From assembly GCA_963924565.1 (NCBI GenBank), contig OZ004615.1, positions 17,670,001 through 17,734,000 on the forward strand: DNA of 64,000 nt, written 5' to 3'. Positions 3,604 to 55,538 of the stretch are shown piece by piece; positions within the stretch are counted from its first letter, which is position 1; every line of letters starts with the position of its first letter. This DNA is from Ascidiella aspersa. Lineage: Eukaryota. The translations under genes were made by a program, and so were the position numbers. Below the pieces are notes generated by a model. The model was not told the origin of the DNA. It was given only the letters and a program-made list of their open reading frames with translations, and ran no database searches.

Positions 3604-4475
3604 TGCAACGGTTATCTCCGCCGGCCACCAAGTAAATGAACTTAGTAACGTTATATGAACTAAACACTTCCCTATTCGTAAAAAGATTTTGTTTACTGAG
3701 TGTATGCTTTTAACGTGCAGCTTATACATATGTCAGCTTCGAAAAAAGTACTATCCATAGCGTTATTATCTGTTGGACCAAGGCCAGAGGTAGTAGGCTG
3801 TAGGCTCTGTCAACCTTCAAAACAAAGAAAAAGCGTAGCTCCTACATGTTGGCAATTGGACTATGGAAGTAACGAAGTGTAGCAATGGCGGCGCTACAAA
3901 CCAACATCAGAGATCCATGACCGAAAATCATGTCTCTCGTTAAATGTGTAATATGTTTGCAAAGCCGCCGAGTAAAGGCAAGAACCTAAACTAAACCGAC
4001 AAGGCATGATGTGTGTCTTTCTCCGCGCAGCGCAGGATTCATCGTCGGTCGAATATAACAAAAACACATTGGCGCGGATGCTACTGGTACTTTTAAGCCA
4101 ACTGTTGTTGGTGTCACGTATGTGATAAGGATGACTGCTGCCTACAGAGAGCCGGGCGACACTTTGGTCATGTGATCTCCTCCACGGCAGCACCCATGGC
4201 TCGCGAAAAAAGAGAAAGAGAAAGAGAAAAACAGGCCGAGTGCGAATGGAAGAGGACATTGAGTACACGACAGCAAGGCAACGGCAGACCCAGAGCGCTG
4301 TACTAACGCCGCCGGCTCCCGTTTTACAGTCAATCCACTGCGAGGACGCAGTTTAAAGACAAAGAAGAGTCGTGTTTCGTTATTTGGAACAATTTTCTTC
4401 AAGTTTCAGTGCTAAATGTCCATGTGGTGGTAATCACGGATTAACCATTGGAAATAACACGTCATCACCTCGAAA
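3604..4475. promoter_or_regulatory. Putative bidirectional promoter between divergent BRAT1 and RREB1
   Basis: Start codons at 3603 (-) and 4476 (+) point away from each other about 870 bp apart. The interval is CpG-rich compared with both flanking gene bodies. It contains GGAAGT (ETS-like, ~3865) and ATGGCGGC (YY1-like core, 3885-3892). Confidence 0.6.
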
Positions 4476-7400
4476 ATGTCTCGACGCAAGCAATCGGTTC
4501 CATGTAAAGTTGGAGGTATGTCAGTGCGTTTGTTCTAATAGTATAAATATCAATGTAGAAAGCTATAGCGTTTTAATAAAGCAACCGATATTTCTGTGTA
4601 TTCCACGGTATTTTTATGTGACAATCTTCTTTGAAAGCATTGATCCTTACAGTGGATGATTTTAAACCAAACTGTTGTAAGTAGCGCTAATATAAACGGT
4701 TTTCGTCTTGGGAAATACTCACGCCAAATCTAGTTGACAACAGTTCCCGTTAAAGCGATACTAGGTTTCAAGAAGATGCGAAAGACGCGAAGTGCTTTGT
4801 CAGCTCGGGCGCGTATAAGCCTGGTGAGGCAGCAGCAGCCAGAAGCAGCCGTCGCTTTTCAGACCGTAGTCATCTCGCGGCGCGCGCGCACACACACGCG
4901 CATGAGGTGACGGGCAGGCTCCAGCGCTGTACAAAGAGCGACCGGGCGCCCGCGTTTTACTTTATCAGCACAAGGATTGTGTGCATTTTGGATGATTCCA
5001 ATGCACGCGCTCGCCTCTCTCTGTGCCGCCGCTCGTTGACTGTTGCCTGGCGTGCTGCTTCGCCAATCGCGGATCGCCTTCCACCAAAAACCACCACACC
5101 TACATCCAGCAAGCTCTGCTAGCAGGAAGCACACGGCGGTATCGTTGTTAAAGTGTCCCTTGACTCGTTTCGCCTGACGCTTGGGGCAAGCTTTGTTTTT
5201 CATGGCCACTACGCGCTCTCTCTCTCTCTCTTTCGCGCTATAGAAAATCTGCACTGAGGATTTCTCAGGATTGATGATGGTTTTCATCCCCACAAACCAT
5301 ATGCTAACATATATTTTTACTAAATATGTTGATTTGATGTGTATTGTATTAGTGGAGGGATGTGGTGAAGCAATATATGTTATAGTAACCCAGTATTTTT
5401 TGGATAATATGAGCTTGTGAATCTTCTATGGCTGGTTTATGATTCAAAATCTGCTTTCAGGAAGTGATGAAGTTCCTTTGACATACAACCAGCCTGTTGT
5501 TTCCATTGCTCCACTGAGCAAATACAAGATTTCCCCAAGTAAGAAAATGATATATTCTTGTGTTATTCTTTTGATTTGGGTGGTTAGAAATGTTTTTGAT
5601 TTCATTTTAATCAAATACAGTAATTTAATAATTCACATTGGACAGAAATTGGCTATGTGATAACTTTAATATTATTTTTATTGCTAGAGATTTGTGTAAC
5701 CTTGTCCTTTTGTATTTACTTCTAGACACAAGTATTACAGATGCAAAGGCAGACAGCCAATCCTTGACAGAATTGAATAGTCTTATGTCTCCATCGAATG
5801 ATGATAAAGAAGGGTATGTGAAAGGTTAATATTTATCCTACAAAAGGGCTTTTAAATAACCTCAACAATGTGAAACTTCTTATTTACAGAGTGTCCACAG
5901 CTGTTAACCACACAGAACAAGAAATGGATGCTGAGGGTACACTTTCTTTTTAATAACCCAAATATGTTTGTTTTTGTCAAAACTTATAAGCTTTACTTTA
6001 TTGTTGAAGATTTGAATGACTTTGATTCCAAAGATTCGTTGGACAACAGCAGCATTTCAACTGAGATGGCGACAAAAGAGGAACTCGATGCACAACTGAG
6101 GTATGGTAATTTGATACCTCACATGAATTGAAATAAACATCCACCCACTCAATTTCTTTTAACAATGTTTGCAGATTAACATGTCTTACTACTTAGCTTA
6201 GATACATGTTTTTTATTTTGTAACACTGCTAATGCTAAGTTTTAAAACACTTGATTGCATTAGAACTACTAATATTAGAAAGTAATTCTCTTATTGTACA
6301 TATTTCATCTTGTTAAGTGTTGTTTGGTCTAACAACATACTGTGTTGTGTGAAGTTCAATTATTAACTTTCAATTTAATAAACAAAACAATTTTAGAACA
6401 TTAAGCAAACGAAGATGTATCATTTTTGTTGGTTAAGTTATATAAACAAAAATTCCTAAAATACCTGCTTTAGTACACAATACTTTCTGAAACCTTAGAC
6501 ATGTAATTTACAAAGATTAATGTTTTGTTGTTGTGATTTGTGCCTTGTTATGATAAAAGCATTATATATTGTATTTCTATATAGCCCATGAGCATACAAG
6601 GCCAAATTACCAATGACTGGTCATGTTATGTCCTTTACAGCTCTGCACTGCTTAGTTATAAGCAAACAAATTCTTCGGAGCCATCTAAAAACAAACAAAG
6701 ATTCTCAGCCAGGATAAGAGCCAAAGTACAGCTAAAAGCTCTCAGTTTATCACCACCAGGAAATGGTCCCAAACCCATGCTACTTTCAAGACCGCTACAA
6801 CAAGTAAATGGGTGCTTTTTTACACTCTTTAGTATTTGGTTATTTTTTTTGTTTTATAGCTATATAAAAAACAAGCATCTGTTTAATTTAAAAAAAAAAT
6901 AACAAGGACATAATAATTTGTTTACCTACGCAGGACCTATATTTTCAAGTTATAGGTATGGAACAACCCCCTTTTTTCACTATCACTAGAAATAAGTAAC
7001 TTGTTTAAATATGTAAAATGGGGGTGTCAATTGATGAATTTTTAGAATTGAACATCATCTCCATTAAATGGCTATTTCACATATATTTAAGGTTTATTTG
7101 CCTTTACAAATCATCAATACATTGACAAGCAAGAAAATTTACTAGTGGTATCTTTAATTTCAATCAAAATTTGAATGTCTCTTAGGATTTGGATGCAGAC
7201 AAGGTTCAAGCAGCTAAATCTGAATTGAGGCAACGAAATCTTTCATATGAAGAGGAACTCACATGCCCCATATGTTACAAGACCTTTATGTCCAAATATG
7301 GCCTACTTACACATACTGAAGTACATGCAACCCCAGAGTTAAAGTGAGATTATATGGAGATACTATATTCGGTGTGTTCTTTCCATAAACTTCCTAGAAA

Positions 7401-10400
7401 TATACTTTTTCTTTCAGCAAACTCTTTGACTGCTTACAACTTGGTTTTATGTGGGATTTTTTAAACTTTTATATGTTATATTTTTCATTTTTCTATAGTG
7501 TTCAAAATTGTTCTACATATGACTCTTTAAGGACGCTGGTTGATACTAGTTATTTTTTTCTTTGTGCATGGTATCTTATTACATAACAAAATATCAAGTA
7601 AACTGCCTGGAGCCCTTATCTGTTTTAGTAAAACACTTAAAACGCCATGGAATAAAATACTCCATGGAGCATATTCCTATCCCTTATCTAACTGTAAATA
7701 TCCCTTATCTAAGTCTGAATAAGCTTGTTGAATTATTATGCATTCTAAAAAAACTTCTTAAATGATTATTATGGTGATGTTTAAAATTAGCAGTTATTTC
7801 TGAAAAAGTTTTTTTGTTTGGTCACTGTTATAAAGTATTTTTTCATTGGCCTGAAATCAATATGAACTGTTTTTACCCTGTGTTGAGTTAGGCACTTTAT
7901 TTTTGGTTATGATAAAACAGCTTTTATGCTACCAACAAAGTAATAGAAGCATGAAGCAACATCTTTTGTTTAGTCCTAAGTTTCACTGCCTCACTCTTTT
8001 CATTAGGTGTGAATCTTAAGTTCACCTCATTATAACCAATCTCATATCTTATTTTTAGATGCACGATGTGCAATCTTGCATTCAGTCGCCGATCTGCCTT
8101 CGTGGCACATCAGATTCATTGTCATGCCGATGACTATGGCGATGATGAACTTTACCAGACCCACAACTTCACTCCTCCCAACCCCAAACAACGATCCAAT
8201 GGAGCAACTGGTTTTGGGGATTTGTCAATTATTGATTTCACCTGCTCCAAGTTTCCAGATATTGCAGGGGTAGAAGGAGATTTTTTTTTTAACTTATTCA
8301 TAGAAAAGTTGCTTGCTTATTAAAGTTTAAAAAAATTTAAATTTCTGACAACAGTGTGTAATCTTGTATTATATTCTATGAAGCTTAAACCAATTTAAAT
8401 GCAAAATTATTAAAAACAACAACAGATGTTTAGCTATAAACTCCAGTGTTTTATTTTGTGCAGTTTGCCCAAACCAATTTATTTAAAAATATATTTTATC
8501 ATTTCTTATCCTGTTTTTGCTCATGCGTATTTTTGTTGGGCTCAAATCCCTTTAATAAAACGCCCCATCATACTCCCCTCTTTGCCAAAAACGCATACAC
8601 ACACACAACACACACGCACACACTTGCCTATCGCCGAGCGTTACGATTTCCGCCCCCCCTCTAACATATCGGGCTTGCTTCGCAGAACCTGTGCGTGAAA
8701 AGCAAGCACCGCCTCTCGGACCGCGATCGCCGGCACTTCTTCATGTGCAAGAAGTGCAACGCCCTCTTTCCCACCCTGCTGGTGCTCGAGCGCCACGTCG
8801 CCAAGCACCATGCGCGAAACAGCAGCAACAGCAGTGGTATCACGCCGAAGCTCACCATTCTCGGCAAGACCTACATCATCAACAGCGATATGGCGGCCGC
8901 CGCGACTGCTGCAGTGGTCGTCGACAGCGCCGTCGATGGCGACAAGGCCTCGTCAAATAGCGCCGTTGCCGTCATCCCATCGACCGCCTTGCCGTCCCCC
9001 GCCGATACGCGCGGCTTCATGGACGCCTTGAATCTGAAGAGCTCCGCCGCTGCCGCGGTGCTCGTCGCCGCCAAAGGTACGAGAGTGGCGATGAGCCCCC
9101 TTTTTTTCAATTTCTCTCTTTCGGCTGGAACTCTATGTTCGCAGGGTTCTTGTTTATCCCTTTGAGGTACTGCTGACTTCCTTGTTGATTTTTTATTTTG
9201 TTGCAACCGTTTAATCTAAAAAGACTACGTTTTGACTCTAGTTAGGGGATTGCTATCCTAGGTCTTGTAATATACCGTGTACCGTTGCAAACTTTTTTTT
9301 TACTATAGTTTGTTATTATTAGGTCATTGTAAACTGGTAGTTGTTTAGCTCGTTACCATTAATTAAATTTTATCCTGTAGCATACATCGCTAGGATGTTG
9401 CCGACAGATTGGTCCTAATATATGGAAGAAAATGGTTGTACAAAAAATTGTATAACCATAAAAATGTTTGTTGCCAACACATGTGGCTTTTATATTGTCA
9501 ATTTTTTACATTAACTTGCTGGTAAATCTACAAACGTTTATAGTAACCTAATGGTCACGGGTTTGATGTGCTACCAATGAAAGATGGTGAACTTACATCA
9601 CTTCTCTAAGTTCTAACTTATTAAGGTTTGCGTGAGGCATTTATGATTCAGCTCTCTGTGTGTCAATTAAATTAATCGTTCTGTAATATACCTAGACTAA
9701 TGATGATCACTGTTAACTGTTTAAACGTTTAAAATAGGGGAACAGCTCTTCGGGTTTACCAATCCGGTCATTACGGATATCTACAGGCCGCTAGAGCCCT
9801 CTATAATTATACCGTATACTTAACCACTCGGGCATACAATGCGAGACTTGGTGCTATAGGTCCTTTCTGATCGAGTGACGTGTAACACATGGGTATGGAT
9901 CACGGCACTTTTCAGATAACTTTGGTTCTGGATCAGCACGTCTGCACCCTTCAGAACCGCCATATGTTATCCTAGCCTAAGCATTACAATGGAACCCCAG
10001 TTTTAACGATCCAGTAATGCTGTAAGCTAGCCTGCGAACAAGGAAACGTTTTTGGCCGCTTGTAGTTCCCTGTTTCATTTCCAAATCAATGTGATAATTC
10101 AAAGTACAGTTTTGAAATAACTGCCGTGGCGATATAATAGTTTTAGATTGTGTTTATACTTTGAGGTACGTAATAATAACAAACCAGATACCCAATACCG
10201 TAATTTCGTACTCGTCCGATATCAGTGTGCAGTATCGCTGTATATCTAAAACAACAAAGTTATTGGTATTTCACCAATGGTTAGTGATTTGATGCGGCGT
10301 TTTCCAAATTACGGGTAATTTCCGCTTATTAAAGAAAAAAAATCGAATGGGAGACGGACATTTTCCCCGAAATATCCCTCATCAAAGTATATATATCGGA

Positions 10401-34400: not shown

Positions 34401-36324
34401 ACGTTTACTTGCAGCTGGAAGCAGGTGAACCCCCTGAACCGATTCCACCACCTCCGAAAGTCGAACCCAAGCAATCTAGCAAGGTGGGTGACGTCATGTC
34501 AAAATTTAAAGATTTTTCGTACCACCGTTAACGTCTTAAAAAAAATCTGTTTCCTAAACACATAATGCATTTTTTGCTCGCTATATGTGTCGAACTGCTT
34601 TCGAAGTTTCTAGAAATAACATCAAAATATAACGCGAAATGTGACAACGGTGCGTATCTGGACTTACAGCCTAACACAGGGAATCTGCGGCCGCTGGTCA
34701 TAAGCGGCCCGCCAAGCATCAGAAATGTCCCGCTAAACTTGTTGCATTTGTACTTATTGTGTGCTAGGTAGGACAGCAACAATTTATTTTCCTGCCTTAT
34801 TAAAAAATGGTCGAACAACAGATGTTTAGATTTTGATATGTTTGTTGTTCTGATCAAACCATATGATGCGAGTGTTTAAACAATCTTTTAGTAATTTTCG
34901 CGACGCTGCTAGGAACACGACGTTGATATATATAAAAAATCAAACGTTACGCAAATATAAAATAGAAACTTTTACAACAGCACAGCTATCTTCTAAAAAA
35001 AGACATACAACCTGCGCTTTGTTCGAGGCAATGACAGCAACTAGAAGCAGTCTTTAACATAAAACAAAACACTGAAAAGGGGAAGATTACCACGACGCCT
35101 AGACGTTCAAGAATTGCGAAATCTCTCCGAATCCCTCCTAACAGTTGCTCACGATTTTGTTTGCTTTTGTTGTTGTAGTCGACTCAGTTCGTGTGCGGAG
35201 TTTGCAAGAGGATCTTCAAGCTGGTGGAGGAGCTCAAGGAACATCTCGAGGAGCACAACATCCCGCATCCCTGGCACTGTCCCCTGTGTGGCGTGCCTTT
35301 TACCAATAAGTAAGTGCGAGACTCTCTGTACTGCCTGAAAAGAAATCGGCTAAAAATATATACGTTGTTCTTATACTTTAATACAGTGTTTCTCGTTATT
35401 TTTTATGGATAGCGGCACCCCTCAGAAATATTAAATAGATTTCGGCACCCCTATAAAAATTTTCCGTAAGTAATTCACTAGAATATAGCAATAAATGGCA
35501 CTGGAACAACACACATCAACTCCACAACGTAGAAAGTTATAATTGGATTTATTCCACTCCTAATATTACACAAAAAGTTGTATGAGTTGATCCAAAATAA
35601 AATTGTTAAAGATTACCAAATATGTCGCGCAACCCTCGAGGTTTAGAAATGGCACCCCAGGATGCCGCGGCACCCCGGTTGAGAACCACTGCTTTAATAT
35701 AATACCGATTTTACACTATTGCCTTGGTTTCATTATCAACTGGCGACCTACTAACGGAAGTGTGTTTTGCCATTTTGAAGAAAAAAACATGGTAATACGC
35801 ATTTTTTTTAACTTCGCTTGTTAAAAGTTCAAATTGTCCAAAGCTGGATTTGCAGAACGTTTCCACAAATTGTCGAAAAACTTACCATAAAGGTTAACGC
35901 AATGTTATTTTTCATATTAGAATGGTAAAACCTTTGTAAATGTGTACGTACACTATGCAATTATTAGCTTGATATTTTGTAATTTATTAGCTTGATAATA
36001 AATTACAAAGCCAAAACAGTCGAGTACATTGACATAATTAAGACTAGTCAAGATGATGTCCATCTACTCGACTTTTTTGTCTTTGCAATTTATTATCAAG
36101 CTGTGTAAATGTGTCTGCTAAAAAAACGCCTCTATTCGATGGATGTTTATGAATGAGATGTTTTGCCAGTTTTCTTTTCTAAACGTGACGTCACACTTAC
36201 CAGGTACAATTGCCAACGTCACCTAACGCGACGTCACGGCGAAACCTCCATGGAGCCAAAGTACGTTGAAGATGTACGTCACGGACCTCGTCATCCCCGG
36301 AAGCGATCGAGGAGAACCATGTGA
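4476..36324 (+). CDS. RREB1: Ras-responsive element-binding protein 1 (RREB1/hindsight family) zinc-finger transcription factor, about 1695 aa, 33 coding exons
   Basis: Phase-consistent exons: 4476-4515, 5461-5538, 5726-5813, 5890-5936, 6010-6100, 6641-6803, 7186-7343, 8059-8269, 8686-9076, 10441-10590, 13930-14058, 15974-16169, 18016-18157, 18762-18865, 19343-19509, 20273-20355, 21085-21265, 23108-23446, 24131-24349, 24876-25073, 25231-25349, 27224-27297, 27840-27964, 28723-28856, 30007-30237, 31240-31350, 31813-31917, 32378-32620, 32862-33083, 33688-33915, 34415-34483, 35179-35309, 36204-36324 (5088 nt, no internal stop). RREB1-diagnostic segments: [95 protein letters not shown]. 13 fingers counted. 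Confidence 0.9.
11845..12262. mobile_element. Non-autonomous hAT-type MITE (418 bp)
   Basis: Terminal inverted repeat CAGGGGTGGGCAAA / TTTGCCCACCCCTG. Perfect 8-bp target-site duplication CCATATAC at 11837-11844 and 12263-12270. Confidence 0.9.
14051..14418 (+). repeat. Degenerate direct duplication (~185-bp unit) starting at the end of RREB1 exon 11
   Basis: CTCTGCCGGTAAGAATCGAC...TCTGGTAAAAGT...ATGATAACTTGGT.TTCAGTTGAC...GTGTTAAT recurs from ~14234 as CTCTGCCTGTTAGAATCGAC... Confidence 0.75.
16274..16556. mobile_element. Degenerate hAT-type MITE
   Basis: Ends AGTGTTTCTCAA / TTGAGAAACACTG, with internal GGCGACCC subterminal repeats. The TSD has decayed. Confidence 0.65.
19216..19236 (-). 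mobile_element. tRNA-derived SINE fragment (B-box region)
   Basis: The minus strand reads GAGGTCGTGAGTTCGAATCTC, 20/21 identical to 57875-57895. It contains the GTTCGAA B-box but no complete cloverleaf. Confidence 0.5.
21391..21670. mobile_element. hAT-type MITE, same family as 35384-35691
   Basis: CAGTGTTTCTC ... GAACCACTG termini; near-perfect TSD GTTTAAAT/GATTAAAT. Long internal identity with the 35384 copy (TATGGATAGCGGCACC, ACACACATCAACT, AAAGTTATAATTGGATTTATTCCACT). Confidence 0.85.
22428..22590. mobile_element. Inverted-repeat (foldback) remnant, probably derived from a Penelope-like element terminus
   Basis: Arms AATTGCAAAGCCAAAAAGGTCGAG / CTCGACCTTTTTGGCTTTGCAATT, plus an inner perfect 20-bp inverted repeat CGATACGAGCTTGTATCATC / GATGATACAAGCTCGTATCG. 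It encloses the hammerhead. A related copy lies at ~35989-36102. Confidence 0.65.
22470..22511 (-). ncRNA. Minimal type I hammerhead ribozyme (Penelope-like element type)
   Basis: Minus strand: ATTAA CTGAAGA T GATAC AAGCTC GTATC GAAA CG TC TTAAT. This gives helix I (ATTAA/TTAAT), the CUGANGA core, helix II (GATAC/GTATC), GAAA, the palindromic ACGT minimal helix III and a UC cleavage site. Confidence 0.75.
25075..25129 (+). repeat. 20-bp tandem repeat (~2.7 copies) directly at an RREB1 splice donor
   Basis: TAATGTAAAATTATGCTTGT repeated immediately after exon 20. Confidence 0.85.
25944..27116. mobile_element. hAT-type non-autonomous element (outer element of a nested pair)
   Basis: 16-bp TIR CAGTGGTTTTCAACCT / AGGTTGAAAACCACTG. 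TSD GCCTAGAC / GGCTAGAC (one mismatch). Confidence 0.85.
26482..26813. mobile_element. hAT-type MITE (332 bp) nested inside the 25944-27116 element
   Basis: 16-bp TIR CAGGGGTGGGCAACTT / AAGTTGCCCACCCCTG. Perfect TSD ATGTAGAG at 26474-26481 and 26814-26821. GGCCCGC subterminal repeats. Confidence 0.92.
28950..29480 (+). repeat. Degenerate tandem duplication, ~265-bp unit, in RREB1 intron 24
   Basis: ACTTAAGCTCCACTTTA.TATTTGTCTATAAA, ATTAAAGTCCA, CTAATAGGAG.GCAAAG and GTCTCCTTAA each occur twice about 265 bp apart. Confidence 0.8.
29578..29884. mobile_element. Foldback/MITE-like element built of GTGC(G/A)CACATTT subrepeats
   Basis: Imperfect ~50-bp inverted termini (CAATGTGCGGGAAAAAGTGCACGCAAAAATGTGCAAAA versus the reverse complement of the right end) and at least five internal GTGCGCACATTT-like units. 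Confidence 0.65.
35384..35691. mobile_element. hAT-type MITE (308 bp)
   Basis: CAGTGTTTCTC / GAGAACCACTG termini; perfect TSD CTTTAATA on both sides; GGCACCC subterminal repeats. Confidence 0.9.
35989..36102. repeat. Palindromic element related to the 22428-22590 foldback, lacking the ribozyme core
   Basis: AGCTTGATAATAAATTACAAAGCCAAAACAGTCGAGTA ... TACTCGACTTTTTTGTCTTTGCAATTTATTATCAAGCT. The arm sequence is shared with 22553-22590. Confidence 0.75.
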
Positions 36325-38470: not shown

Positions 38471-41400
38471 TCAAACGTAGTCGGTCTGCTTCTCTCTTTG
38501 CATCGGACGCACAGCTCTGTAGCTCTCCCGGAACGACTCTCGCATTCTCTTCAGTCCTTGTCCGACTCTCCCTCTGTTCCAGTACTCCTCATCTTCCTTT
38601 TCGACGTAGGCGCTTCCGCAGAGTATCAGCGCTCCTCCGAGGATCCCGACTCCCATGGCAGCCCATCCTAAGAAGAGCGAAGTCCCGAAAACGTACCTTC
38701 TTCCCACGTCCATGGAGGGTAGCAGAGCTAAAGCGTTGTATTCTTGTACCACCTGATCAGAGAATTTGGTTTAAACAACTAGTTTATAGGCCTACTGTAA
38801 ACTGTACTTTGAATATTTAGGTTTATAGTCAAATCTACAATAAAACTATACAGTAAACTAGAGTTTATACTTAGAATGCTGAGACGTTGATTGGGGTCGA
38901 AATTATTTTAATGATAACCGTTGTTTAGTTACTATATAACATGATACAACACCCGTAACACGACACAGTTGGTGACTCAAGTAAATTACTTGACTTGGCT
39001 TAGTTTTCAAATTCTTTTTATTGATTAATCCGTTTACTCACATAAAACGATTCTCTTGTTGAGTGTTTCATTTTAAATGTATCTTGGAAGTATTGCTTAT
39101 GACTTGGATGAGTGATTTTTATAATATCTCAGGCTAATATTTAACATTTCGAAAAAGTTTTGGCATGAATCAGAAAAAGTCTCAAAAAACTATTTTTTAC
39201 GAAGGTGGAAACACCTATAACTTGCACAACAAATACCTGATGGCCGTAATAGGACACGGCGACTCCAATGGAAAAGGACGAAAATATCCAAAACACGGCG
39301 GCCACCTTTGCAACTCTGTTCTTCATTTTACCGTCGTCCATGCACTTTGTGCACTCCATGCCGAAAATGGACAGCAGAAGGGCAAAGCCACCGAACACAC
39401 ACGCAATCATGGCCAGACCTCTTGCGACCTGCGTAAAGTAATTAGCGTTAAATTAAAGCTTTTAGCAGCTTTAAATTAGGTTAATATATGTAATATGTAA
39501 TGCGTTGATGGTGTTTAAATATAAGCCAGTATAGTTATGTAGGTAAAACTAAGGAAAGGGGTTTGGCGGTTGTGGAATATCTATGAACATCTACTCTGCT
39601 ACAATGAACGGCTAATGTTTGCGGTAAAAACGTTTATAGTTCGTGAGCTTTTTTGACAAATATATTATAAAGCACACTCAAGACACAACCGCGGTGTTTT
39701 TGTTTGAAGTTGAAGGATTACATGTCAAATTTTGTTTTTTGTTTGTTGTGTTTTTATTTTAGGGGCACAGTTTTAGCCACACTGTTTGCGCAATTGTAGT
39801 TAAAGATACCCGTAAGTTAGAATTACAAGCCTAGAAACTTGCAGTATACTTGAGACGTGAGTAAAAGCGCGTACCGGTACCATGCGGTTTATCTTCACCC
39901 AATGGACGCTTCAATGATTTTGTACTATGGTGTCGAAACAAAAATAACCTACCAAGAAACGTTCGTTATGTCATGGCCCGTTTTGCTGATTTAGATTATT
40001 TAAACCATATTATAGGCTACTATAAGGTAATTTCCTTCACGTTTCGATACGGGTTTAATGCACGTTCCAATCAATGGACGTTGACACAGTTTGTATGCAC
40101 GTTTAAAATAATGCATGCCTAAATTTATTGAGGGCACACATTACTTTATGAAAAAACAACTCAGGAAAACAAGCAAAAAACATAGTTTCAACAGGCTTTC
40201 TTGAGTTGCGACAAACATATTTGATGCAAGTGTTTTACGAATACAAATTACTACAACAAATTTACCTGGACTTGGACTGAGAGACCAAGAAAGAACCCGT
40301 CAAAATCGTCGCATTGCCATTGGCCGGTCGAATAAGTGATGCAACGCAACCAGATTCCTGAAAATACAAAACATTTTTTTTTAAAGCTGTTTTTTTTAAC
40401 ATAAAATTTTTGAATAATTGAAGTTGTTTAATTCTGTCGTAATACGGATTTTTACTTGGTTAGTCAGTCACCTCTGGTACTTTCAATTTCAAAATGGTAA
40501 AAAGTTCTAAGATTTGTCATGTTCTTGATGGATGACTTATAATTTATCTAAACATCATTATTTAGCGTTAAATACAAAAGCGATATGGAAAACCTTGATA
40601 TAGCTAAAAGTTGAACACTAGCTTGTCATACGAGGTCTGGCCAAAGTCAACTACATGTTACATTTTTGGTAATCGAAGTGTAACGTTAAACGAATAGGGT
40701 AGTATAACTTGAGTTTTCCGTCGTTAAACATGCCGGTAACCTATCTTTTCCTGTCACAATTGCTTGGTCTTAAAAAGCGTACTGAAATTGTTATAATTAG
40801 GGCAATTATTTTTTGGCTTGGATAAAAAGTCAAAATTTGGTAAAAATTAACTCATTAGGTCAAAATTTATCAAAATTATTCCAAGTCTAATTAGTTTACG
40901 AAATGCGCAGAAATCCTTTAGTTTTGAATTACATCCAGCAACATTTTAACTGTGTTTTGCTTTCATTAGACTTACAGGAATATACGGTATATGCCAGAAT
41001 TAATCGCGCAGACCAAGTTTATCGCAAGTTGTTCTTTGTTTTGGCTTCTGAATTAGACAAATGCATTAAACAGTATTTGCTGTGCCTTGTTTCCTATTTA
41101 GATAATATGCTAGATATTTGTTAATTTTTTCGAATTATTTTTACCTTTTATTTCAAATTATAAACTGTTTGGTCAACAATTTTCTAAAATAACCAACATC
41201 CTGTTTTTTTTTGCATTTTTATAGTTGTTTGTCTTTCTGATATTCCAAAAATATCGACTAAGCAATTTCAAGAGTTTTGTACAAAACCGAACACATAACT
41301 AATTTGTGTTCCAACGGTAGTCAATAAAACATTAAAAAGAAATGTCTGACGAAGCCAAGACACTAATGCAATACTTTATTCAACAATGCGTTGTTCAAAT

Positions 41401-41937
41401 CAACGTATTGGTCAAAATTTTGTCAAAAAAACGATTTTTTAGGTCAAAATTTGTTCAAATTTGAATTTTGTAGGTCAATTTTTTTATTTTTTGCTAGAAA
41501 ATAATCGCCCTAGTTATAATTCATTAAAATTTGACGCTAGATTATTATGTATGCCTATGGTTTACTGAATAAAAATACTCAAGGTTAAACTTTGAATTTG
41601 TGTTAATCTACTTGGAACGTCGACCATTATAGACAAGGGGTACGATAAAGTTACATGAAAGCTCAAAGGGTACGAGCGCTAAAAAGGTTAAGAAGCACTG
41701 ATCTAGATCGATTCGTGTTTAACCTCTCTATACGAATTTAACTCCAGTGGTACGCTATAGGCAAAATTTTTTTGGGGCGTGGTCGGTGGTCTTACCTTGA
41801 TGCGTTATTGTTGCTTCGATAACGTCCAAAGATGGGTCGTTTTTCCGCCAATCCGGCAAAATTACAGCTAACATAGTACAGAGCCCAGCCACAAGACTGA
41901 TTACGAGTCCAATGATTTGTAAAGCGTTATTTGCCAT
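38471..41937 (-). CDS. Claudin (paralog A), 235 aa, 4 coding exons
   Basis: Exons 41937-41796, 40357-40266, 39428-39237, 38752-38471, all GT-AG and in phase. Claudin signature W...GIWLRC-x8-C, GMECTKC, FGTSLFLGW, four hydrophobic segments and a C-terminal YV PDZ-binding motif. Confidence 0.93.
40798..41512. mobile_element. hAT-type non-autonomous element with TAGGG termini (715 bp) in claudin A intron 1
   Basis: TIR TAGGGCAATTATTTT / AAAATAATCGCCCTA; perfect 8-bp TSD GTTATAAT (40790-40797 and 41513-41520); GGTCAAAATTT subterminal repeats. Confidence 0.85.
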
Positions 41938-42330
41938 TTCTCTGGTAATATACCTATACAACTTTAAACATATAACAGTGTAACTGAAAAAGAATAGTAA
42001 TTTAAGTTCTTAAATTATACTCAGTTCCTAAATTCTTTAAGTTCTTAAATTATACTATTCGACTCCGTTACTGACTAACTTGTGCGTTTTGTAAAGTTTA
42101 TTTTGCCCAATCAGAAATTGTTCCTTATGGTGAACCTTAATATAAAATTCACCAGGTAACTAATGTGTTTTACTCTTTTATTCAATTTAAAAGCACTCGA
42201 CAATTAAATAAGTCAAACAAACATGTGTAATTTAATATGGAGTCACTGCTGGCACCTAAACACTCGTCCAGATCTAATTCATAACTTATCCTTTCACGTT
42301 ACTGAATCTTCCGTGAATAACACAGCCGCA

Positions 42331-42352
42331 CGATTCGCGAATCGGTTTTATA
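42331..42352 (-). promoter_or_regulatory. Candidate TATA box of claudin A with adjacent palindrome
   Basis: TATAAAA on the minus strand (42352-42346) in GC-rich flanks, about 410 bp upstream of the ATG, followed by the perfect palindrome CGATTCGCGAATCG (42331-42344). Confidence 0.45.
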
Positions 42353-44585
42353 AGACCGTGCCTCAGTAGGCGGCTCCGAATTTGAAACCCGCATTCAGGA
42401 GAATGCCCTGTGTTACCTCACAGGCCCCAACAAAAGGAAACGCCGTCGAAGCCCTTCTTTTCGCTTGGCTGATCTGAGAAATCCTCTTTCTATACCAAGG
42501 CGACTCGGCTTCTAAACTTTTCTCAAAACTTGTCTCGTGATGTTGCGTTATGACGTAACGACATCACCCCTTATTTGGCAATATATTTGCGGTAATGTCA
42601 TTTCCCCTCTTTTTACCCAACCCGCGTGCGCAGCTTTTGAAGTTTGGGTGGATATACAATACATCCCATGTGTTTTTTAAATGTGCTGGGCATGTTTTTT
42701 GTAGTGCCCCGGGGCAGTAGTTTGGGTGTAAGTGGAGCGAAAACCACTTGTTGGGACTTTTAAGGACGCTCGAACGTTCGATTATATACAGACCGTTGCC
42801 GGCAAAACTCATTTGTAAATAGAAAAAAATCGCATTCTACAAAGCGCATTCGTGCCGTGCTAATTTAATTTAGTTTACTTTCACATATTTTCTTAAAACC
42901 TTTTGTGCCTTTTTGCAGTCTTGTTTGTGCCAAACTTGCAAATAAAAAGAAATGCCGAAAAGACGTATATATAACTGTTTAACTATTTCCAAAAAATAAG
43001 TTTAATGCCAGAAAAGTTCAATGACTCATCTTCTTTTAAATCTTTTTTTAAATCCAAGAAAAATACAATAATTGTAAGAAGTATAGCGTTCCCGTACTCC
43101 GTCAAAAATGTTGCAATATTTCCGTAGCGTATTCCACCATTCCTAATGTCTATTGTACATTATTATTTCTCCTTCGCATACTGTGTCGACCTCTCGCACC
43201 TTATTCGGCCATACAAGGTAGCCAGGGTTTCCATTCAATTTCAGACGAGCGTCACCGGAGTCGCAACGCTGATTCGGCAACCCTATACACCTCGTTGTGA
43301 CGTTTCAATGGACGACAATGCGATTGTGTTGTTACAGCGAATGGAAAGAAACTGCCTGTTTAGACTGATGTTGCTGAGAACTCAATGGACTCGTCCATAT
43401 GTGTAAGTGAAAATGGCAAGAAGGGCATTTTTGTGTACATAAAAAAACAGAAGGCATTTTGTGTAATTCTTTTGCTTTGTTGATTTGTATTAAACTAGCG
43501 AACACTTTAGCCTGTCCTGCTATTAATAACCAATAAAAAACACGATATGCTTGCAGCTTGATCATACGAGTTAAACACAAACTTTACTCTGAAATCTGCT
43601 ACTGGTAAGTTAAACATGGCTTGATATTTAAAAAAAATGTTTTTACGATAATTTGGTTTGAGAAAAATAAAAATAAACACTAATTTCTCTATTCACAGTT
43701 TAAACAATAAAACAAAAAAAATATAGTTATGTAAAATATTGTTTTTTATTTAACATTCCTTGGGGAAGGGTCTTGAAATAAGTACATTGGGAGAGTTAAA
43801 AATGACAGTGACAAAAGATCGACTTTGGACTAAGTTCCGATTTAGATATCAGATTTTGGCAGCGGTATAATAAAGAGACCGACGTAAACTACGTAGAGCT
43901 TGATATGCCTTTAGGAAGGCTAAAACGTTTCACTAAAGATTTATTTGTGCCATTATTCAAAGACCAGTCACTTACACATTACAACTGTGACAATAAAACG
44001 ATATATATAGTTCGTTATTTTATTACATAAAAGTATTTCGGATCAACACTTTATAAAGATGAAAATGAAGAATAAAACACAAACTTCGTCTCTACGTTCC
44101 CTCTAGGGATGGAATTAAAAAGTAGTTTGCGTCATTGCGTGTATAAATTCGTTCATCTTTAGATTTAGATTTAGCATTTTTATATTGGGTGTCAGAAAAT
44201 TGCTATACGATATTAAACACTGATTGCTATTTACGAAAATCACTGTTAAACTTTGCGAAAACAAACAGTAGCTTTAAAATCAAAAACAAAAAAATAAAGC
44301 ATGCTGATTTCCTACTTGTTTTAAGAAGGCAATATCAACAATCTCACAGTAACGAAAAATATAAAAATACTAAATAAATTGGTCCAAAACGTCGACTAAC
44401 TTGGTCACATAAAAAAATTCCAGTAAGACTATTTTGCCGAATCAATTTCCACTTTATCAAAAACCAATACAAGGGGTTCTAGCTGTTTTCCAACTAAAAT
44501 ACAAAAGTGCATGCGACCCACAGTCCAAATCCAACCAAATTGAGACAAGTTTAATATGTAAAAAAGAGTTCAACCTGATTGAATT

Positions 44586-47500
44586 TTAAACGTACTCCGA
44601 ACTGAAGTCAGGTAAATTTGATTTCTGTATGCTTAGATTTCCTTGATGTGAAGTCCTGTAGTTGTTAGTAATGTAGGGGATCTCCCTATCCCGATGGTCG
44701 TGGTTAATGCTTGCCGCCACCATCATTGCGCCACCTACCGGCAATATGACCATGGTAGCCCAACCGATGTATAGACACGACCCGTATATGAACTTGCTAT
44801 TCGCTTCGAGTCGCACGTTTAGAGGTTTGCGGAAATCTCGCATAACCTGAAATAGAATTTTTAATATTTTAGCAAAATCTATCAGCATGATTTTAACATA
44901 ATGTTACCATATGAGCAGTATTTTACAGCTATACACACTGAACATCCTATACCTAGAAATATATTTTACCAGAGAAAAAATACATTTTACATTCTGAGAG
45001 ACAAATCCTAAGAACTATAATATAAAAAGGCAAGTTGCAAAATACTTTTAGAAGTGCTTGACGAATCATAGTTACAAACTTACAAATTATTTTTTTCGTT
45101 AATTTGTAAAAAAAGGCTGAATTTATGCGTTTATATGCAGGATAAACCCATTTCTAGATACATGACTTTTTTAATCTGCCATAAGATTCGCTTTGGGAAT
45201 AATTATTCTCAAGGGAAAGACAAGCCATGAGCGAAGAAAGACAATTACGGACAAGTCGTTTTGCCACGAGATTTAACTTAAATTAAACACGTTTAGTAAA
45301 CTAGAGTGCTTTTGTGTTTGTTATCATCATTTCTAATTGTTTTTAAATAGAGCTTTTTAGTGTGATTCTGTTTACGAAAACAGTAGGATTGTTTTTCGTT
45401 AAACTTTAACTTATGTATATCGCGAAAATATTTTCTAAAAAAACCTAACCACATAACTCGCCTATTTTTGTAGTATCGACTCGAAATAAGGGTTAACTGG
45501 TTGTTTTAAGCGATTGGTATCAACCTATTTAATTTGCAAATGACTTTACGTGATTAATTTTACAACAACTGGTCCACACCGTTGCATACAGCTATTTTCG
45601 ACCCAGTTAGGAAACACTTTTTAAACACAATTTTAATACGAATCAAACGCCAGTGCTGTAACTCCCAGGGGTGAATGGTACGCGCGATATTAGCGTTACG
45701 CGATGTTGTTTAAAGTGCTAAAAACGCTTTCGGCTGCAAAAAAGTAATGGCTTTGTACAGAAATCGATGGAAAGCGAAATTAATGTGTTCGCGTGCAGTG
45801 ACTCCCACGAGTTAGTAGTGCAAAGCGTGTTTGTTGGCCGAACGCAAGTCATCGATCCCCACTGCCGCGTCGCGGGAATTGCGATGTCATTGTCGCGTCA
45901 CAAACGACCATTTCGCGGGTGCGAGGAACAGGACTCTCTACCGAAAGGCAGTGAAGCGGAAGAGTATTGCCTCTGACAAGTTGCTCATTGCTACAAGGCC
46001 AGTCACTAGTGTCAATAGAAACATTCACCAGCAACGGCGCTATGCAAAAATACACCAAAAAACAAGTCCTAAACACTTATTTCGGTTTACTTTAAAGTTT
46101 AAAGCATCGTTTATACCAGTGGTTGTCAAGTTTTTTTTAGCATGCGGCACACTAAAAAAAATCTTAAATATTTCGCGGCACACTTTAAACAGAGCAACAA
46201 TAGAATAGTTTTACAATCGCCCTTAACACACGACGAACTATATGTAAATGTCTCAATATTATTAATTTGTAATGAGTAGTGCGTATATAAGTCTAAAATT
46301 CTTGCGTGTATGTCTATTGCTAATACAGATACCTTATTTTCCAAAACTACAAAAAGTTTCGGGCACACTTGGCAATCTCTCGAGGCACACTAGTATGCCG
46401 CGGCACACAGTTCGAGAATCACTGGTTTATACAGAAAAATATTTTATCATACTCTTTTGTTAGTCACCTTTTTAATTTTAGTTAATTAGTTAGACAAATG
46501 GCTCTTTTTTAATTTGTTTAGTAGCCGCACAAGAAAGTATCTATAGGGATTTAGTAGATTTTGAACTGCAGCAATCAAGGGCACACACTCACAGTTGGAA
46601 CCAAATGAACAGAACATATCAAATTGGTGCCGAATATCGATTGAACGCTACGCTACGTCCCCGTCGTTTTGTCGACGACGTGAATTGTGCAGTCGGCTCA
46701 CACGTCATTATGTTTGTTTCGACCCATTCGTTGGCCCTAGCAGTACTGGATCATCTTAGGTTGTGTTAATTGGTGACTAACCTTTTTAGGTGTAAATTGC
46801 GGTATTGGACAATTTCACTAGATTTTTAACGGGGTATATACGTCTTGTTGTCGGTGTAAAACAAACTTCAAAGCTAGATAAAATATATGAAAAAGTCATA
46901 AATATAAGATCAGTTGGATAATTTTTTTTATACAAGCCAGCTAAGCGTACCGTATAAATAACCCTTTTAAAATCATCTAATAAAGCGGAAAGGTTATATG
47001 TCATTTTATTTTAGTATTTTTTCAGGATTTTGGTTTCATATTAATTTTACTATTCTATTTATTTCATGTAATTTTAGCCATACACCATTTCAGAACAGCC
47101 TTTGGTGCAGTAAAATATTTGATTATTCGCGATCGGCAAATTCGACCAGGCTGTTTAATTCAAGTTCCTCTGATACTTCCATGCACATTTATGGTAGTTA
47201 AAAACCTTGTGTTATGTCTCGAAGATTTTTGGAAATTCCCAATTTTATTATGAGGAAATCCATGCTAAAAGGTAATAAATACAAAACATAACAAACAAGA
47301 AACCGACGTTTCTCGCAAGATAAATTACATTAGATTAGTTAACTATCTCAATTTAACCAATCTCTATTATAAAGAAAAGGTTATTGGTTTCAATGGCGTA
47401 TTGCAACGTCCTAGGGTGAAATAAAAATATTGTTTTTTTTCACAAACACAAATACGCTCGAAAAGTTTTTATAAACTTGTAAAACATCAATTCAAAATGG

Positions 47501-50500
47501 CTGCAATGGTTTTCAATACAACTACTACAGTATGTTTTAATTGTCGACATGGATATACCTTTTGCGCGTAGAAAGAAACCGCGATGCCGGTTAGGATACC
47601 AGCAATAATCCAAAGTATCCCGGAGCTGACGGCCATGCGTTGTTTGTAACTTCTGCTGGAGCCCATGCAAGACGTGCACTCCATCCCAAGCATAGAGAAT
47701 AACACGGCCAATATACCGCAGGATATCGCTGTGCACATCAGACCTCGGCCGACCTGAATTCGCAACCAAAAAAGTTTAACACCTATAGCTTTTTATCGTT
47801 CTCGTTTAGAAGAAGTATCCTTTGTTTAAACATGGGTAATGATGCAAGGGGAAGTCTTTGTGTTCAAGTCAAGCGCCATTTTTGACAGCATTTATGTAAC
47901 CGGGCTAAAAATAAATGGCGCGTCTAAATCTTGAAACATTGTTGATTGCATGAATCGAGTTAATGGCTTTCCAACCAGAGTTGTCGACTAAAAAGCGAAT
48001 CAACCTAATTTATCCCTTGACGCGTGGTTTCCGCTGCTTGGCCTAAAACTCGCAATTAAATATGTTAGAAATGGCTCTCAGAAGCTTTGTACCATTATGC
48101 GCCAATGAGTAAAATGGCGAAATTCTGACCGATGGCCAGGACAAAACTTTTCACTTGAACATTTGTTTAGGCCTAGGGTATGGTTTTGGTGACAGCAAAG
48201 AAATTTTAAAATAACGCAATTGTTTAATCTCAGTTTGTAAAAATCTCTATTTGTAAAAACGATGTTTTGAGAGACCGTTAGAGAAATTTGTGTGATCGTT
48301 TTGGTCGCTCAAAACACCCTTTAAAACTGCACCTGTAATAATTCTCAATATCTAAACACCAGCATCAAGAAACATTAGCAATTTCTTGTGAATAATCAAC
48401 AGGCCGGGTACACCACGAATATGATTAAATGATAGGTCTCGAATAGAAGAAACTCGGGCGAACACGTTTACGAGCGAACTTCGCTCCGAAACGCATTACA
48501 AGCTCGCACAAATTAAACAACGAGTCAAATGTTTCATTACAAACTGCAGGAAGTTCGATTGGCCTCGCAAAGCGCGCCTCTGGTCGTTACATTGATTGAC
48601 CTAAAATGTCGCAACGAGTCACGAGGGTGCAAATTTAACGTGTCAGTACAACTGCTGTTAAACGGTAACGGCTCTTAGTCCCGTGTATAAAAACGTTCTC
48701 GTCGGAAATGCAGCCGTTTATATAACGCAATCGAACTGTATTTTATAATACTGTACAATGGTGACAGCTATGACTGTCGCAGGCGCTACACTCACTTTAT
48801 TATAGGCAAAAGGAGAATTGAATAGCGAATGGAAAGTTCTTATTTATCGATGCCACGCACATTAATCACCTCGCTCAATTTTTTACAAAGTCGTCATTAA
48901 AGAAAGTATATCGGGAGATGTAAAGCTGCTTTTTGTTGCAGTAAAGATTTGTTCCGGTGTGTTACATTTCGATTATTACTTTTTAGTAATCCTCCTTGCC
49001 CTTAAACCGTGATGAAGTGTACAGCAGCGAATAAACGTTAAGCACAGAGCCCGTGAATATTAAAATATTTCTCAAGGCTGGTGCTTTGAAAACTTGGATG
49101 TAATCAAATGTTAATCTGCTCCTACATTGATCGTCCCCCGAAAAATGTCGATAGGAATTATAATAAAAGTGACAGGAATATGCACAAGGTGCATGTACAT
49201 CTGTAAGACCACGTCAGAATACCATATTGATTTGGCGGTTATTCAACAAAGCTAGCAACGTCCAATGGAAGAATGTTGTAACGAACAAAAGGATTAATAA
49301 AATCAAAAACAGCTCATCTGGTAATTATAATGTTACCGAATGAAGGTTTCGGCAAGCAATTCAATTTTTTTTCCTTTTTCAGGAGTAAATCGCACTGAGC
49401 GCTGTTTTTGATTATTATTATTATTATTATTATGGTTATTATGCCTGGTAGGAACAGTTTATGTATTGAACAAGGATTGTTTAGGAATCATTTATTCAAC
49501 CCACTGGGGCAAAGTAAGATGGATTTCAAACTGTTTTGAAAACTTGAAACTTTCTTTGTTAACAAATAAATTAAAATGCTCTCCACTAAACAGTTTTACA
49601 ATAAAACAAAACGAACGGCGTCCTAAAATTAGTCAATTGTGGAACAACGCGCTCTACTATAATACCTATGTTCAGCTTTTAGACAAAAAATTAGTTATTG
49701 TTTTTACCTGGACCGTTGTTGGCAATTTGACGAAAAACTCCGTAAATCCTTGGCACTGCCATGTTCCCACAGGAAACGACACGCATTGAATCCATATTCC
49801 TGTAAACACAAACTAAATGTTTAGCGCTTTTGTCGAAGCAAACCAAATATATTTATAATAATCAATGACAACAAGCAACAGAAATGCTTCCAAACAGGGA
49901 CGAAAATAACTAGTTCTTTAACGATGGTTGAAGGTATTGTCACTCAAAAGGTCCCTATCGTAATGTTTTGGTTTAAAAAAATTAATTAAAACACAAGGTT
50001 CCAAGTAAAATGTAAGAACTTCTCATTTTTCCCTGGCTTTAGTTCAAATATTAAAGTATTTTTTACAGTTTGTATTACATTTTGCAGTGTAATACATGCA
50101 CTTCTATAAACTTTTCCTGTAGGTCTATTTTAAAGGAAGTTGCAAATTTATCTTATGGCGAATCGCCTGTAAAGGATTGTTTTTTACATATTGTTTTTTA
50201 CAATTTTGTTTTTCAAATACAAATCACATAGTATATAAAGTACAATGAACGTTTGATCAGGCTGTTTACAAAAGGAAGCAATCCCATTTGAGAATTTGTC
50301 TTTATTTTCCTTTTATGTGTTTTGTGGCTCTTAATTAGTTAATGTTAATGTCTCAGTACATGCTTAAAAATTTTTTTATTCATTTCGTATTTTTACACAT
50401 TTTGTATGTAGTCTATTCTATAAGTAATTTTAAACTATATAAATTTAAAGCATATATGGCAGCGTTTTCGCCCCAGATTACTTAGGTCTTACAATTACAC

Positions 50501-53900: not shown

Positions 53901-55538
53901 AAAGATCTCTAATACTTAATTGCGAAAGTAATACGGAGACCTGTCTCTTGTTACTTAAACTTACTGTGTTAACCGCAAATAGCCACACCGACACACTATA
54001 CATTTGGACAGAAACATGTATTACCTTATTTCTTCATTGCGTATGCCTACACATAAAAGTTTCCAACAACAAGACTGTGATATTCGCAATGGTGAATTTA
54101 AAATATTTTTTCTGATCAGCTTTTAAAGCTCATAATAAAGTTCAAATAAACAATGACTGAATTTTACTGACAGCATATGATCTGATTCGTGCAAAATCGG
54201 TGACTTCAAATAAACTATAAGCCGAAAGCTCAAAAAATGTTTATCTAAAAAGACACACGCAAACATTATGAACACGGAGTCGCATTAGGCTACTGTGGTA
54301 GCGCATGCAGCTGTTGTACAAATTAAAAATAAAATATGACAATCGCCCATATACCTACATCGTGGCCTGTACAATATAGTGAAATAGACTTATCTTCGTA
54401 TGCCAAACTGAAAATTCGTTGATTTTTAACACTTGGTCTTGCTAACAATTTTATTGGGTTTCGCAAACCTTAACTTCATTTATATCTATTAGTCTGGTCT
54501 TGCCCTTTTTAGTCAGTGAATTAGCAATACAGATTTTGCGCAGATTCGTGTGGATTTTGGTGCATTTATGTGTGCTTAAAATAAAAAAAATCGATGAATA
54601 CCTTTACAAAAGTAAGCTAATGTGTGTAGCTGCGCTGTCTCGAAATTCAAGTAAAAATCTTAGTTGCTTAATTTAAAAACTCTTTCCTACCGTATACAGA
54701 CAATGTGGGCAAATTGGCGGGGCAGCTGAAAAACAAATTTGATTGCGTTTTTAGATTGGTGCAATCAATATTTAATGTGATAGGGTACTGGTGAGATACA
54801 ATACGACGTTTGGGAGCGCTTAAAAAATAAGGTATTGCTAATTGTTTAATTTTCAAAACTTTTGATAACGATGACCGTTTTTTATTTGATATTTATATAC
54901 AAATGATGTACCACATTTGTTTTCGGGCACAAAACTCACAATCACTTATTTTTCTAATGTATATAAAAAACAAATGGGGAAAAATGCATGCATTGCTACA
55001 AACAAATGAAACGAACAAAAGTATAGGAAGCACAATATGCCATTTTTGGTTTAGGAAAAAAATCCTTGTTTTAGATCATTTTAATATTAGGCGCGCTAGA
55101 TATGTCGCAATTAGTTAACATCCTGTATACTTTTGCGACTTGAAAACGTAAATCATTTATCTTATACATTTTAGTTCATACTTTTTATTTTTGATTAGTG
55201 CTAACCTTCTAAAAGTCTAAAATGTATTAAATTACTTTATATATTTTAGGCGTTTATAATCTTATTTTCCTAAATATTTTTCATATAAAGTTACGGCTTG
55301 CCTATTTATAGTTATCTTTTATTTATTTATGTAACTTACGGTAAAAAATCCGCAAACAACGGAAATTGTTTTTACTGTAAACACCCAGCAATTCGTAATT
55401 CGTTTAATTTTCTCCCGCGTAACAATGCGTTTGTTTTGTCACAAAAACTTTTGATAAACAAAAACACAGCAATAATAATAATTTGCGTTGCATTTCACTG
55501 ACAAGAAATCGAATGCAAGCGTATGGCAAGCTGTATTA

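Follow-up and report, generated by a model that had tools for sequence, protein, structure and literature searches.

A short first exon carrying an RRKQxxP peptide heads the ascidian RREB1 orthologue and probably represents the ancestral N-terminus of the bilaterian RREB1 family

Introduction

The stretch of DNA analysed here is a 64,000-nucleotide segment of the Ascidiella aspersa genome (contig OZ004615.1, positions 17,670,001 to 17,734,000; hereafter the window), which contains an orthologue of the zinc-finger gene RREB1 on its forward strand. We found that positions 4476–4515 are very likely the genuine first coding exon of this gene, and that the N-terminus which they encode is ancestral to the RREB1 family of bilaterians and not a gain specific to this lineage. 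The exon encodes the peptide M-S-R-R-K-Q-x-x-P at the start of the protein.

The N-terminal interaction motif for the nucleosome remodelling and deacetylase (NuRD) complex is defined as RRKQxxP. It was first described in FOG-1 and later in SALL1, SALL4, BCL11A, ZNF296 and ZNF827, and makes direct contact with RBBP4. Of its residues, the second arginine, the lysine and the proline are essential, the first arginine and the glutamine less so, and an extended form is given as RKxxxPxK/R.

The motif-bearing exon and its splicing

The features of the gene are listed below, all on the + strand.

4273–4475, 5' untranslated region of exon 1, with an approximate start; sense RNA depth begins in bin 4273–4463
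4416–4433, upstream open reading frame in the leader, 5 codons (MSMWW) and then a stop
4476–4515, first coding exon, 40 nt, phase 1, 13 residues plus one base; carries RRKQxxP
4516–5460, intron 1, GT..AG; joint 4515/5461 in 4 RNA reads
5461–5538, exon 2, 78 nt; RNA joints 4515/5461 and 5538/5726, splice sites checked in the letters
5726–5813, 5890–5936, 6010–6100 and 6641–6803, exons 3–6; RNA joints, GT/AG ends and an open frame
7186–7343, 8059–8269 and 8686–9076, exons 7–9; RNA joints and Pfam zf-C2H2 matches
10467–36312, remaining RREB1 exons, placed by homology only, from the colinearity of Phallusia P0001 and Clavelina P0015 in tblastn

The letters of the exon define its ends clearly. The ATG at 4476–4478 has an A at −3, residues 3–9 read RRKQSVP (RRKQSVPCK with the flank), and a GTATGT donor follows directly at 4516. 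The acceptor of intron 1 consists of a polypyrimidine tract and an AG at 5459–5460, so that exon 2 begins at 5461. To examine the splicing, reads from one RNA sequencing run of the same species were aligned to window positions 3700–9400 (5,701 letters). A total of 72 out of 80 aligned reads were at least 99% alike, and their orientation fits + strand RNA in a stranded library. The key joint, reported by the aligner as 4513->5459 with a cut of +2, corresponds to 4515/5461 with GT..AG ends, and it was covered by four reads with four start places and a shorter side of 60 nt. The initial annotation had placed an N-terminal MSRRKQxxP peptide on a 40-nt phase-1 exon of its own joined to 5461. The letters, the reading frame and the RNA agree on this exon, and the reads carry the joint.

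Seven further GT..AG joints were recovered from the RNA (5538/5726, 5813/5890, 5936/6010, 6100/6641, 6803/7186, 7343/8059 and 8269/8686), giving lengths of 40, 78, 88, 47, 91, 163, 158, 211 and 391 nt for exons 1–9. The frame runs without a stop from the ATG at 4476 into the zinc-finger exons across the eight RNA-supported junctions, as judged by exon-length phases and per-exon translation. The ATG at 4476 is the first of this long open reading frame, and exon 1 is both transcribed and spliced. Upstream of it, a TAA lies in frame at 4455 and no ATG reads through to 4476 in frame without a stop; in this frame, the leader has ATGs only at 4416 and 4422, and both fall in the upstream open reading frame that ends at 4433. 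We therefore infer that translation starts at 4476, which would place the motif at the extreme N-terminus. Inside the upstream open reading frame, at 4419, all eight RNA reads carry an A where the assembly has a T, which is probably a polymorphism between individuals.

Two introns of the gene are very short (5814–5889, 76 nt; 5937–6009, 73 nt), and RNA joints support both. Over exons 2–4 (5419–5991) a few read pairs have the opposite orientation, at a depth of 1.2–2.2, which could reflect weak antisense transcription or library leakage.

Identity of the gene

The identity of the gene was established from its zinc-finger exons. When the exon 8 region (8036–8320) was searched against 1.8 billion representative proteins, one strong match was obtained, Phallusia mammillata P0001 (E 4e-17), a 1435-residue protein named zf(C2H2)-69 in the Ciona/Phallusia naming. 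In tblastn, at least 17 exons of the window match P0001 and Clavelina lepadiformis P0015 in colinear order, with 37–86% identity per exon. The next-best matches of P0001 (E 1e-73 to 1e-79) are fish and echinoderm proteins that bear the name RREB1. The assignment of the gene to RREB1 in the initial annotation is thus borne out, first by the colinear tunicate proteins and then by vertebrate and echinoderm RREB1 as the best matches outside the tunicates.

The finger set typical of RREB1 and Hindsight was recovered by colinearity, namely a finger pair followed by a D-F-(S/T)-C-x-K-F-P box, a further characteristic finger, the PWASSL finger and a C-terminal finger pair. At least ten C2H2 fingers lie on separate + strand exons between 4476 and about 36312, and Pfam returned generic C2H2 families only for the ten exons searched. 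Exons 3–6 form a poorly conserved linker without zinc fingers, while exons 7–9 encode the first three C2H2 fingers of the protein and are colinear with Phallusia residues 166–374. A loose RNA read end at 9077 continues into an exon near 10440, and the C-terminal finger pair was located at 35185–36312 through the Phallusia and Clavelina matches.

Two elements of other RREB1 proteins were looked for and not found. The N-terminal three-finger cluster, which is present in the sturgeon, sea urchin and Aplysia RREB1 proteins checked, appears neither in the RNA-supported exons 2–6 nor in Phallusia or Clavelina, and its third finger, the NGNM finger (NGNMHRH), occurs in no + frame of the window. Judging from these sequences, loss of the cluster is tunicate-wide and does not conflict with orthology. 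The CtBP-binding pattern P[ILVM][DN]L[STRK] was likewise absent from the gene range in the window and from the Phallusia and Clavelina proteins; the RREB1 proteins of sturgeon, dog, sea urchin and Aplysia contain a PxDLS motif.

Spread of the motif among RREB1 proteins

The motif was then followed through RREB1 proteins of other animals. Among tunicates, Phallusia P0001 starts MSRRKQSAPCKVGG and the Clavelina protein MSRRKQLVPCKVKD. Dozens of ray-finned fish RREB1 proteins start MSRRKQPNPNKV, in a search that was partly seeded by N-terminal words. The seed of a second protein search covered residues 160–600 only, the finger region, which left the search unbiased for the N-terminus. It returned MSRRKQxxP starts in sea urchins (P0099, P0101), a starfish (P0096), the scorpion Centruroides (P0111), the hagfish Myxine (P0187) and the molluscs Dreissena, Aplysia and Gigantopelta, and in a further mollusc, Babylonia, the motif lies a few residues inside the N-terminus. 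With the sturgeon RREB1 as query, sharks and rays, a sea turtle and many birds were added, starting MSRRKQPSPSKV.

The motif was absent from several groups. None of the 13 mammalian clusters listed in the sturgeon search carries it, their starts being of the MTS..SP type with one MASPP; the squamate models seen start MMAAVMS... and the amphibian models with other peptides. The dipteran 'pebbled' and hymenopteran models returned by the finger-seeded search also lack it. In Ciona intestinalis, all annotated zf(c2h2)-69 isoforms (P0117, P0311–P0317) start MLAHQD..., directly ahead of what is the third finger in the remaining tunicate proteins, and the N-terminal exons may be either missing from these models or lost.

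The exon structure outside the tunicates was inspected at three loci. In each, the annotated gene begins with the motif exon followed by a phase-1 intron, and the exon measures 43 nt in Gigantopelta, 46 nt in Centruroides and, exactly as in the window, 40 nt in Acipenser (sturgeon). Tunicates (PCKV) and vertebrates (PNKV or PSKV) also have in common a chordate-specific extension of the motif, PxKV. The occurrence of the motif across at least four phyla, together with the common phase-1 intron and the PxKV extension, therefore indicates that the exon is orthologous and ancient.

These results changed the evolutionary picture given in the initial annotation. Its statement that vertebrate RREB1 lacks the motif did not hold, as hagfish, sharks and rays, ray-finned fishes, a turtle and many birds start MSRRKQxxP and only the mammalian, squamate and amphibian models differ. 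Its suggestion of an ancestral motif lost in vertebrates survives in part: the motif is ancestral and was lost in some lineages, but among vertebrates the apparent loss is limited to those three groups of models. Its proposal of a gain in this lineage, through exon capture or convergence, is contradicted by the sea urchin, starfish, scorpion and four mollusc proteins and by the phase-1 intron of the sturgeon, gastropod and scorpion genes. The novelty claimed for this lineage also falls away, since the orthologue survey found that invertebrate RREB1 records already carry the motif widely.

Constraint on the N-terminal peptide

The peptide of exon 1 is identical to the Phallusia N-terminus at 12 of 13 residues and to that of Clavelina at 11 of 12. 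Exons 2–5, in contrast, gave three to seven identities with these proteins, which is the chance level, and of exons 3–6 only exon 6 could be aligned to Phallusia (19 identities). In tblastn, no match in the window was obtained for residues 1–165 of P0001. Within the first ~100 residues, no stretch other than the exon 1 peptide is conserved among tunicates, and with the tunicate identities and the spread across four phyla the pattern is one of a conserved motif with diverged flanks. Purifying selection has thus preserved the N-terminal peptide as an island in front of a linker that evolves fast.

A degenerate M-S-R-R-K-Q-x-x-P pattern had six matches in the 308.6-Mb genome against one for the reversed control. 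From this count and the 12/13 identity to the Phallusia N-terminus, a chance origin of the motif is excluded.

Proposed recruitment of NuRD

The window peptide, RRKQSVPCK, fits both RRKQxxP and the extended form and contains the essential arginine, lysine and proline; the agreement with the NuRD-interaction consensus noted in the initial annotation is therefore confirmed. FOG-1/ZFPM1, SALL1/SALL4, BCL11A, ZNF296, ZNF827 and ZNF423 are multi-zinc-finger factors with an identical M-S-R-R-K-Q-x-x-P start at residues 1–9, and the carrier described here is also a multi-zinc-finger protein, with at least ten C2H2 fingers in its downstream exons. In ZNF423, the MSRRKQ start is conserved in vertebrates and invertebrates and lies on short first coding exons. 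The residues after the proline differ, being PCKV in ascidian RREB1 and PQH in the SALL sequences compared. A PDB sequence search with the 20 residues translated from 4476–4535 gave no match, in a set of chains of at least 20 residues, which does not contain the solved FOG-1, SALL4 and BCL11A peptides.

The genome also encodes the expected partners. An RBBP4/7 orthologue was identified (116 bits to CAF1C_H4-bd), as were an MTA protein (MTA_R1) and a p66/GATAD2 protein (P66_CC). The RBBP4/7 gene is split over several exons, and its first coding exon has 344 codons (G000:C2:10791802-10792836, minus strand; L017 730–1764); this exon is unusually long and accounts for the larger part of the WD40 propeller. 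Another WD40 protein, 441 residues long and encoded by a single exon at L018 508–1833, has an acidic N-terminal region and resembles GRWD1.

By homology with FOG-1, SALL and BCL11A, residues R4, K5 and P9 would dock on the histone-H3 binding face of the RBBP4/7 orthologue. Such docking of a free N-terminal peptide would recruit the NuRD deacetylase and remodeller to sites bound by RREB1, and NuRD at these sites would make ascidian RREB1 a repressor. From its sequence, the exon 1 peptide probably binds RBBP4. As the tunicate protein lacks the CtBP motif and the three-finger cluster, no co-repressor handle other than this peptide can be recognised on the ascidian protein.

Alternative explanations

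Several points weigh against the exon being a regular, ancestral and NuRD-recruiting N-terminus of RREB1. The key joint rests on four reads, from about 6% of one run, and a short upstream open reading frame precedes the ATG at 4476. Sense RNA over 4846–5460 points to a putative second start whose product would lack the motif, and an annotated Clavelina isoform (X5) would also leave it out, with its predicted start at residue 51. The binding to RBBP4 is a prediction from the peptide, the apparent absence from mammals comes from gene models only, and the motif is not universal in tunicate annotations, as the Ciona models start further downstream.

The RNA and the Clavelina isoform bear on the first alternative, in which the motif transcript is minor and the main product comes from a promoter in intron 1 without the motif, so that NuRD recruitment would be optional and isoform-specific. 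Sense RNA covers 4846–5460, the 3' part of intron 1, with a depth of 1.2–2.8 in bins 4846–5418, beside a bin of zero depth (4655–4845) and with zero depth in the other introns. The region around 4750–5250 is G+C-rich, exon 2 is closely preceded by an in-frame ATG at 5439, and many vertebrate isoforms, like Clavelina X5, begin at a downstream methionine. A second promoter within intron 1 that yields a motif-less protein is thus plausible, and the RNA could represent an alternative promoter or partial intron retention. However, the depth over exon 1 (3.9–5.2) exceeds that over 4846–5418, the putative leader in intron 1 holds many upstream ATGs, and the RNA read output contains no start cluster. 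We therefore consider it unlikely that the motif-less form is the main product. The SALL2 E1 isoform is described as a carrier of the MSRRKQ repression motif. A parallel may exist between the two SALL2 isoforms, E1 and E1A, and the intron-1 RNA and Clavelina X5, the alternative start here being putative only. E1A reportedly arises from an alternative promoter and lacks the motif.

A second alternative, which we regard as improbable, is that the peptide is functional in another way: through RBBP4/7 in non-NuRD complexes (PRC2, SIN3, CAF-1), as an H3-tail mimic for other readers, or as a basic nuclear-localisation element. RBBP4/7 is common to several complexes, SRRKQ after removal of the methionine resembles the H3 tail ARTKQ, and one paper concerns H3 N-terminal mimicry. 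Against this, the characterised N-terminal RRKQxxP carriers (FOG-1, SALL1/4, BCL11A, ZNF296 and ZNF827) all recruit NuRD through RBBP4.

Finally, an origin by capture of a SALL-, FOG- or BCL11-type first exon, or by convergence, was rejected as highly improbable on the motif spread, the intron phase and PxKV: although donor exons exist in the genome, in the SALL orthologue and in a gene with a 43-nt phase-1 first exon that both start MSRRKQxxP, the motif heads RREB1 in at least four phyla, the phase-1 intron is identically placed at each locus examined, and the PxKV extension of tunicates and vertebrates is not found in the SALL sequences compared.

Other MSRRKQxxP starts and neighbouring genes

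Elsewhere in the genome, a SALL (spalt-like) orthologue at G000:C2:18893352 (+ strand; loci L005/L011/L016) starts MSRRKQLNP, with SALL-type fingers and a Q-rich region 7–10 kb downstream of this start. Three more ATG-SRRKQxxP starts were found, at G000:C1:7673527 (− strand, L003), G000:C9:19631200 (− strand, L008) and G000:C3:2851070 (+ strand, L006). Among these three, MSRRKQSNPQHV heads a 200-codon open frame, MSRRKQEKPQQFRIG lies on a 43-nt phase-1 exon, and MSRRKQYFP may be due to chance.

The downstream neighbours of RREB1 in the window were judged from their translations alone:

38471–47765, − strand, claudin/PMP22-like exons
55488–56183, + strand, stomatin-like exon
59615–61453, + strand, 612-codon single-exon open reading frame resembling MUS81

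RREB1 as a carrier of the motif

RREB1 is not among the motif carriers in published lists. Our literature search found no paper containing both 'RREB1' and 'MSRRKQ', and none of the papers containing 'RREB1' and 'NuRD' links them through the motif. A review of RREB1 discusses CtBP and never mentions NuRD. Mammalian RREB1 is described as a repressor within CtBP, LSD1 and HDAC complexes, and its interactome places it with KDM1A and HDAC3. The missing link between RREB1 and the motif is likely explained by the human, mouse and fly proteins being without the peptide: mammalian RREB1 and the Hindsight/Pebbled proteins of the Drosophila type share the orthologous zinc-finger architecture, but their N-termini lack the motif.

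The motif in RREB1 has so far been known only as unremarked letters in database records, and what is new is the RREB1 family as a carrier. For the window itself, the exon is an ordinary conserved first exon, and a near-identical N-terminus is already present in public protein records. The RREB1 proteins of sturgeon, sharks, birds, sea urchin, Aplysia and Centruroides belong to the same family and have the same motif, and the phase-1 intron behind it is shared with sturgeon, Gigantopelta and Centruroides. In contrast to the tunicate protein, the sturgeon, sea urchin and Aplysia proteins have both the three-finger cluster and PxDLS, and the dog protein has PxDLS.

We tentatively propose, at somewhat less than an even chance, that RREB1 was ancestrally a NuRD-recruiting factor, with a FOG-like motif inherited from the bilaterian ancestor, and that the use of co-repressors was later partitioned. 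Mammals and insects such as Drosophila would have lost the NuRD motif and rely on CtBP/LSD1, tunicates would have dropped the CtBP motif together with the N-terminal fingers and depend on the NuRD motif, and fishes, birds, echinoderms and molluscs would retain both; alternative first exons may act as an on/off switch for the motif. If this is true, the best-studied models, mouse and human on the one hand and fly on the other, are both derived, which would explain the missing link in the literature.

RREB1 is an effector of Ras/MAPK and TGF-beta signalling that has been studied almost only in mammals and flies, and in most other animals it carries a canonical NuRD-recruitment peptide. The mammalian data on the CtBP/LSD1 co-repressors may therefore not transfer to zebrafish, chick, sea urchin or ascidian. 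For the embryos of these animals, the finding provides a hypothesis for the repression mediated by RREB1.

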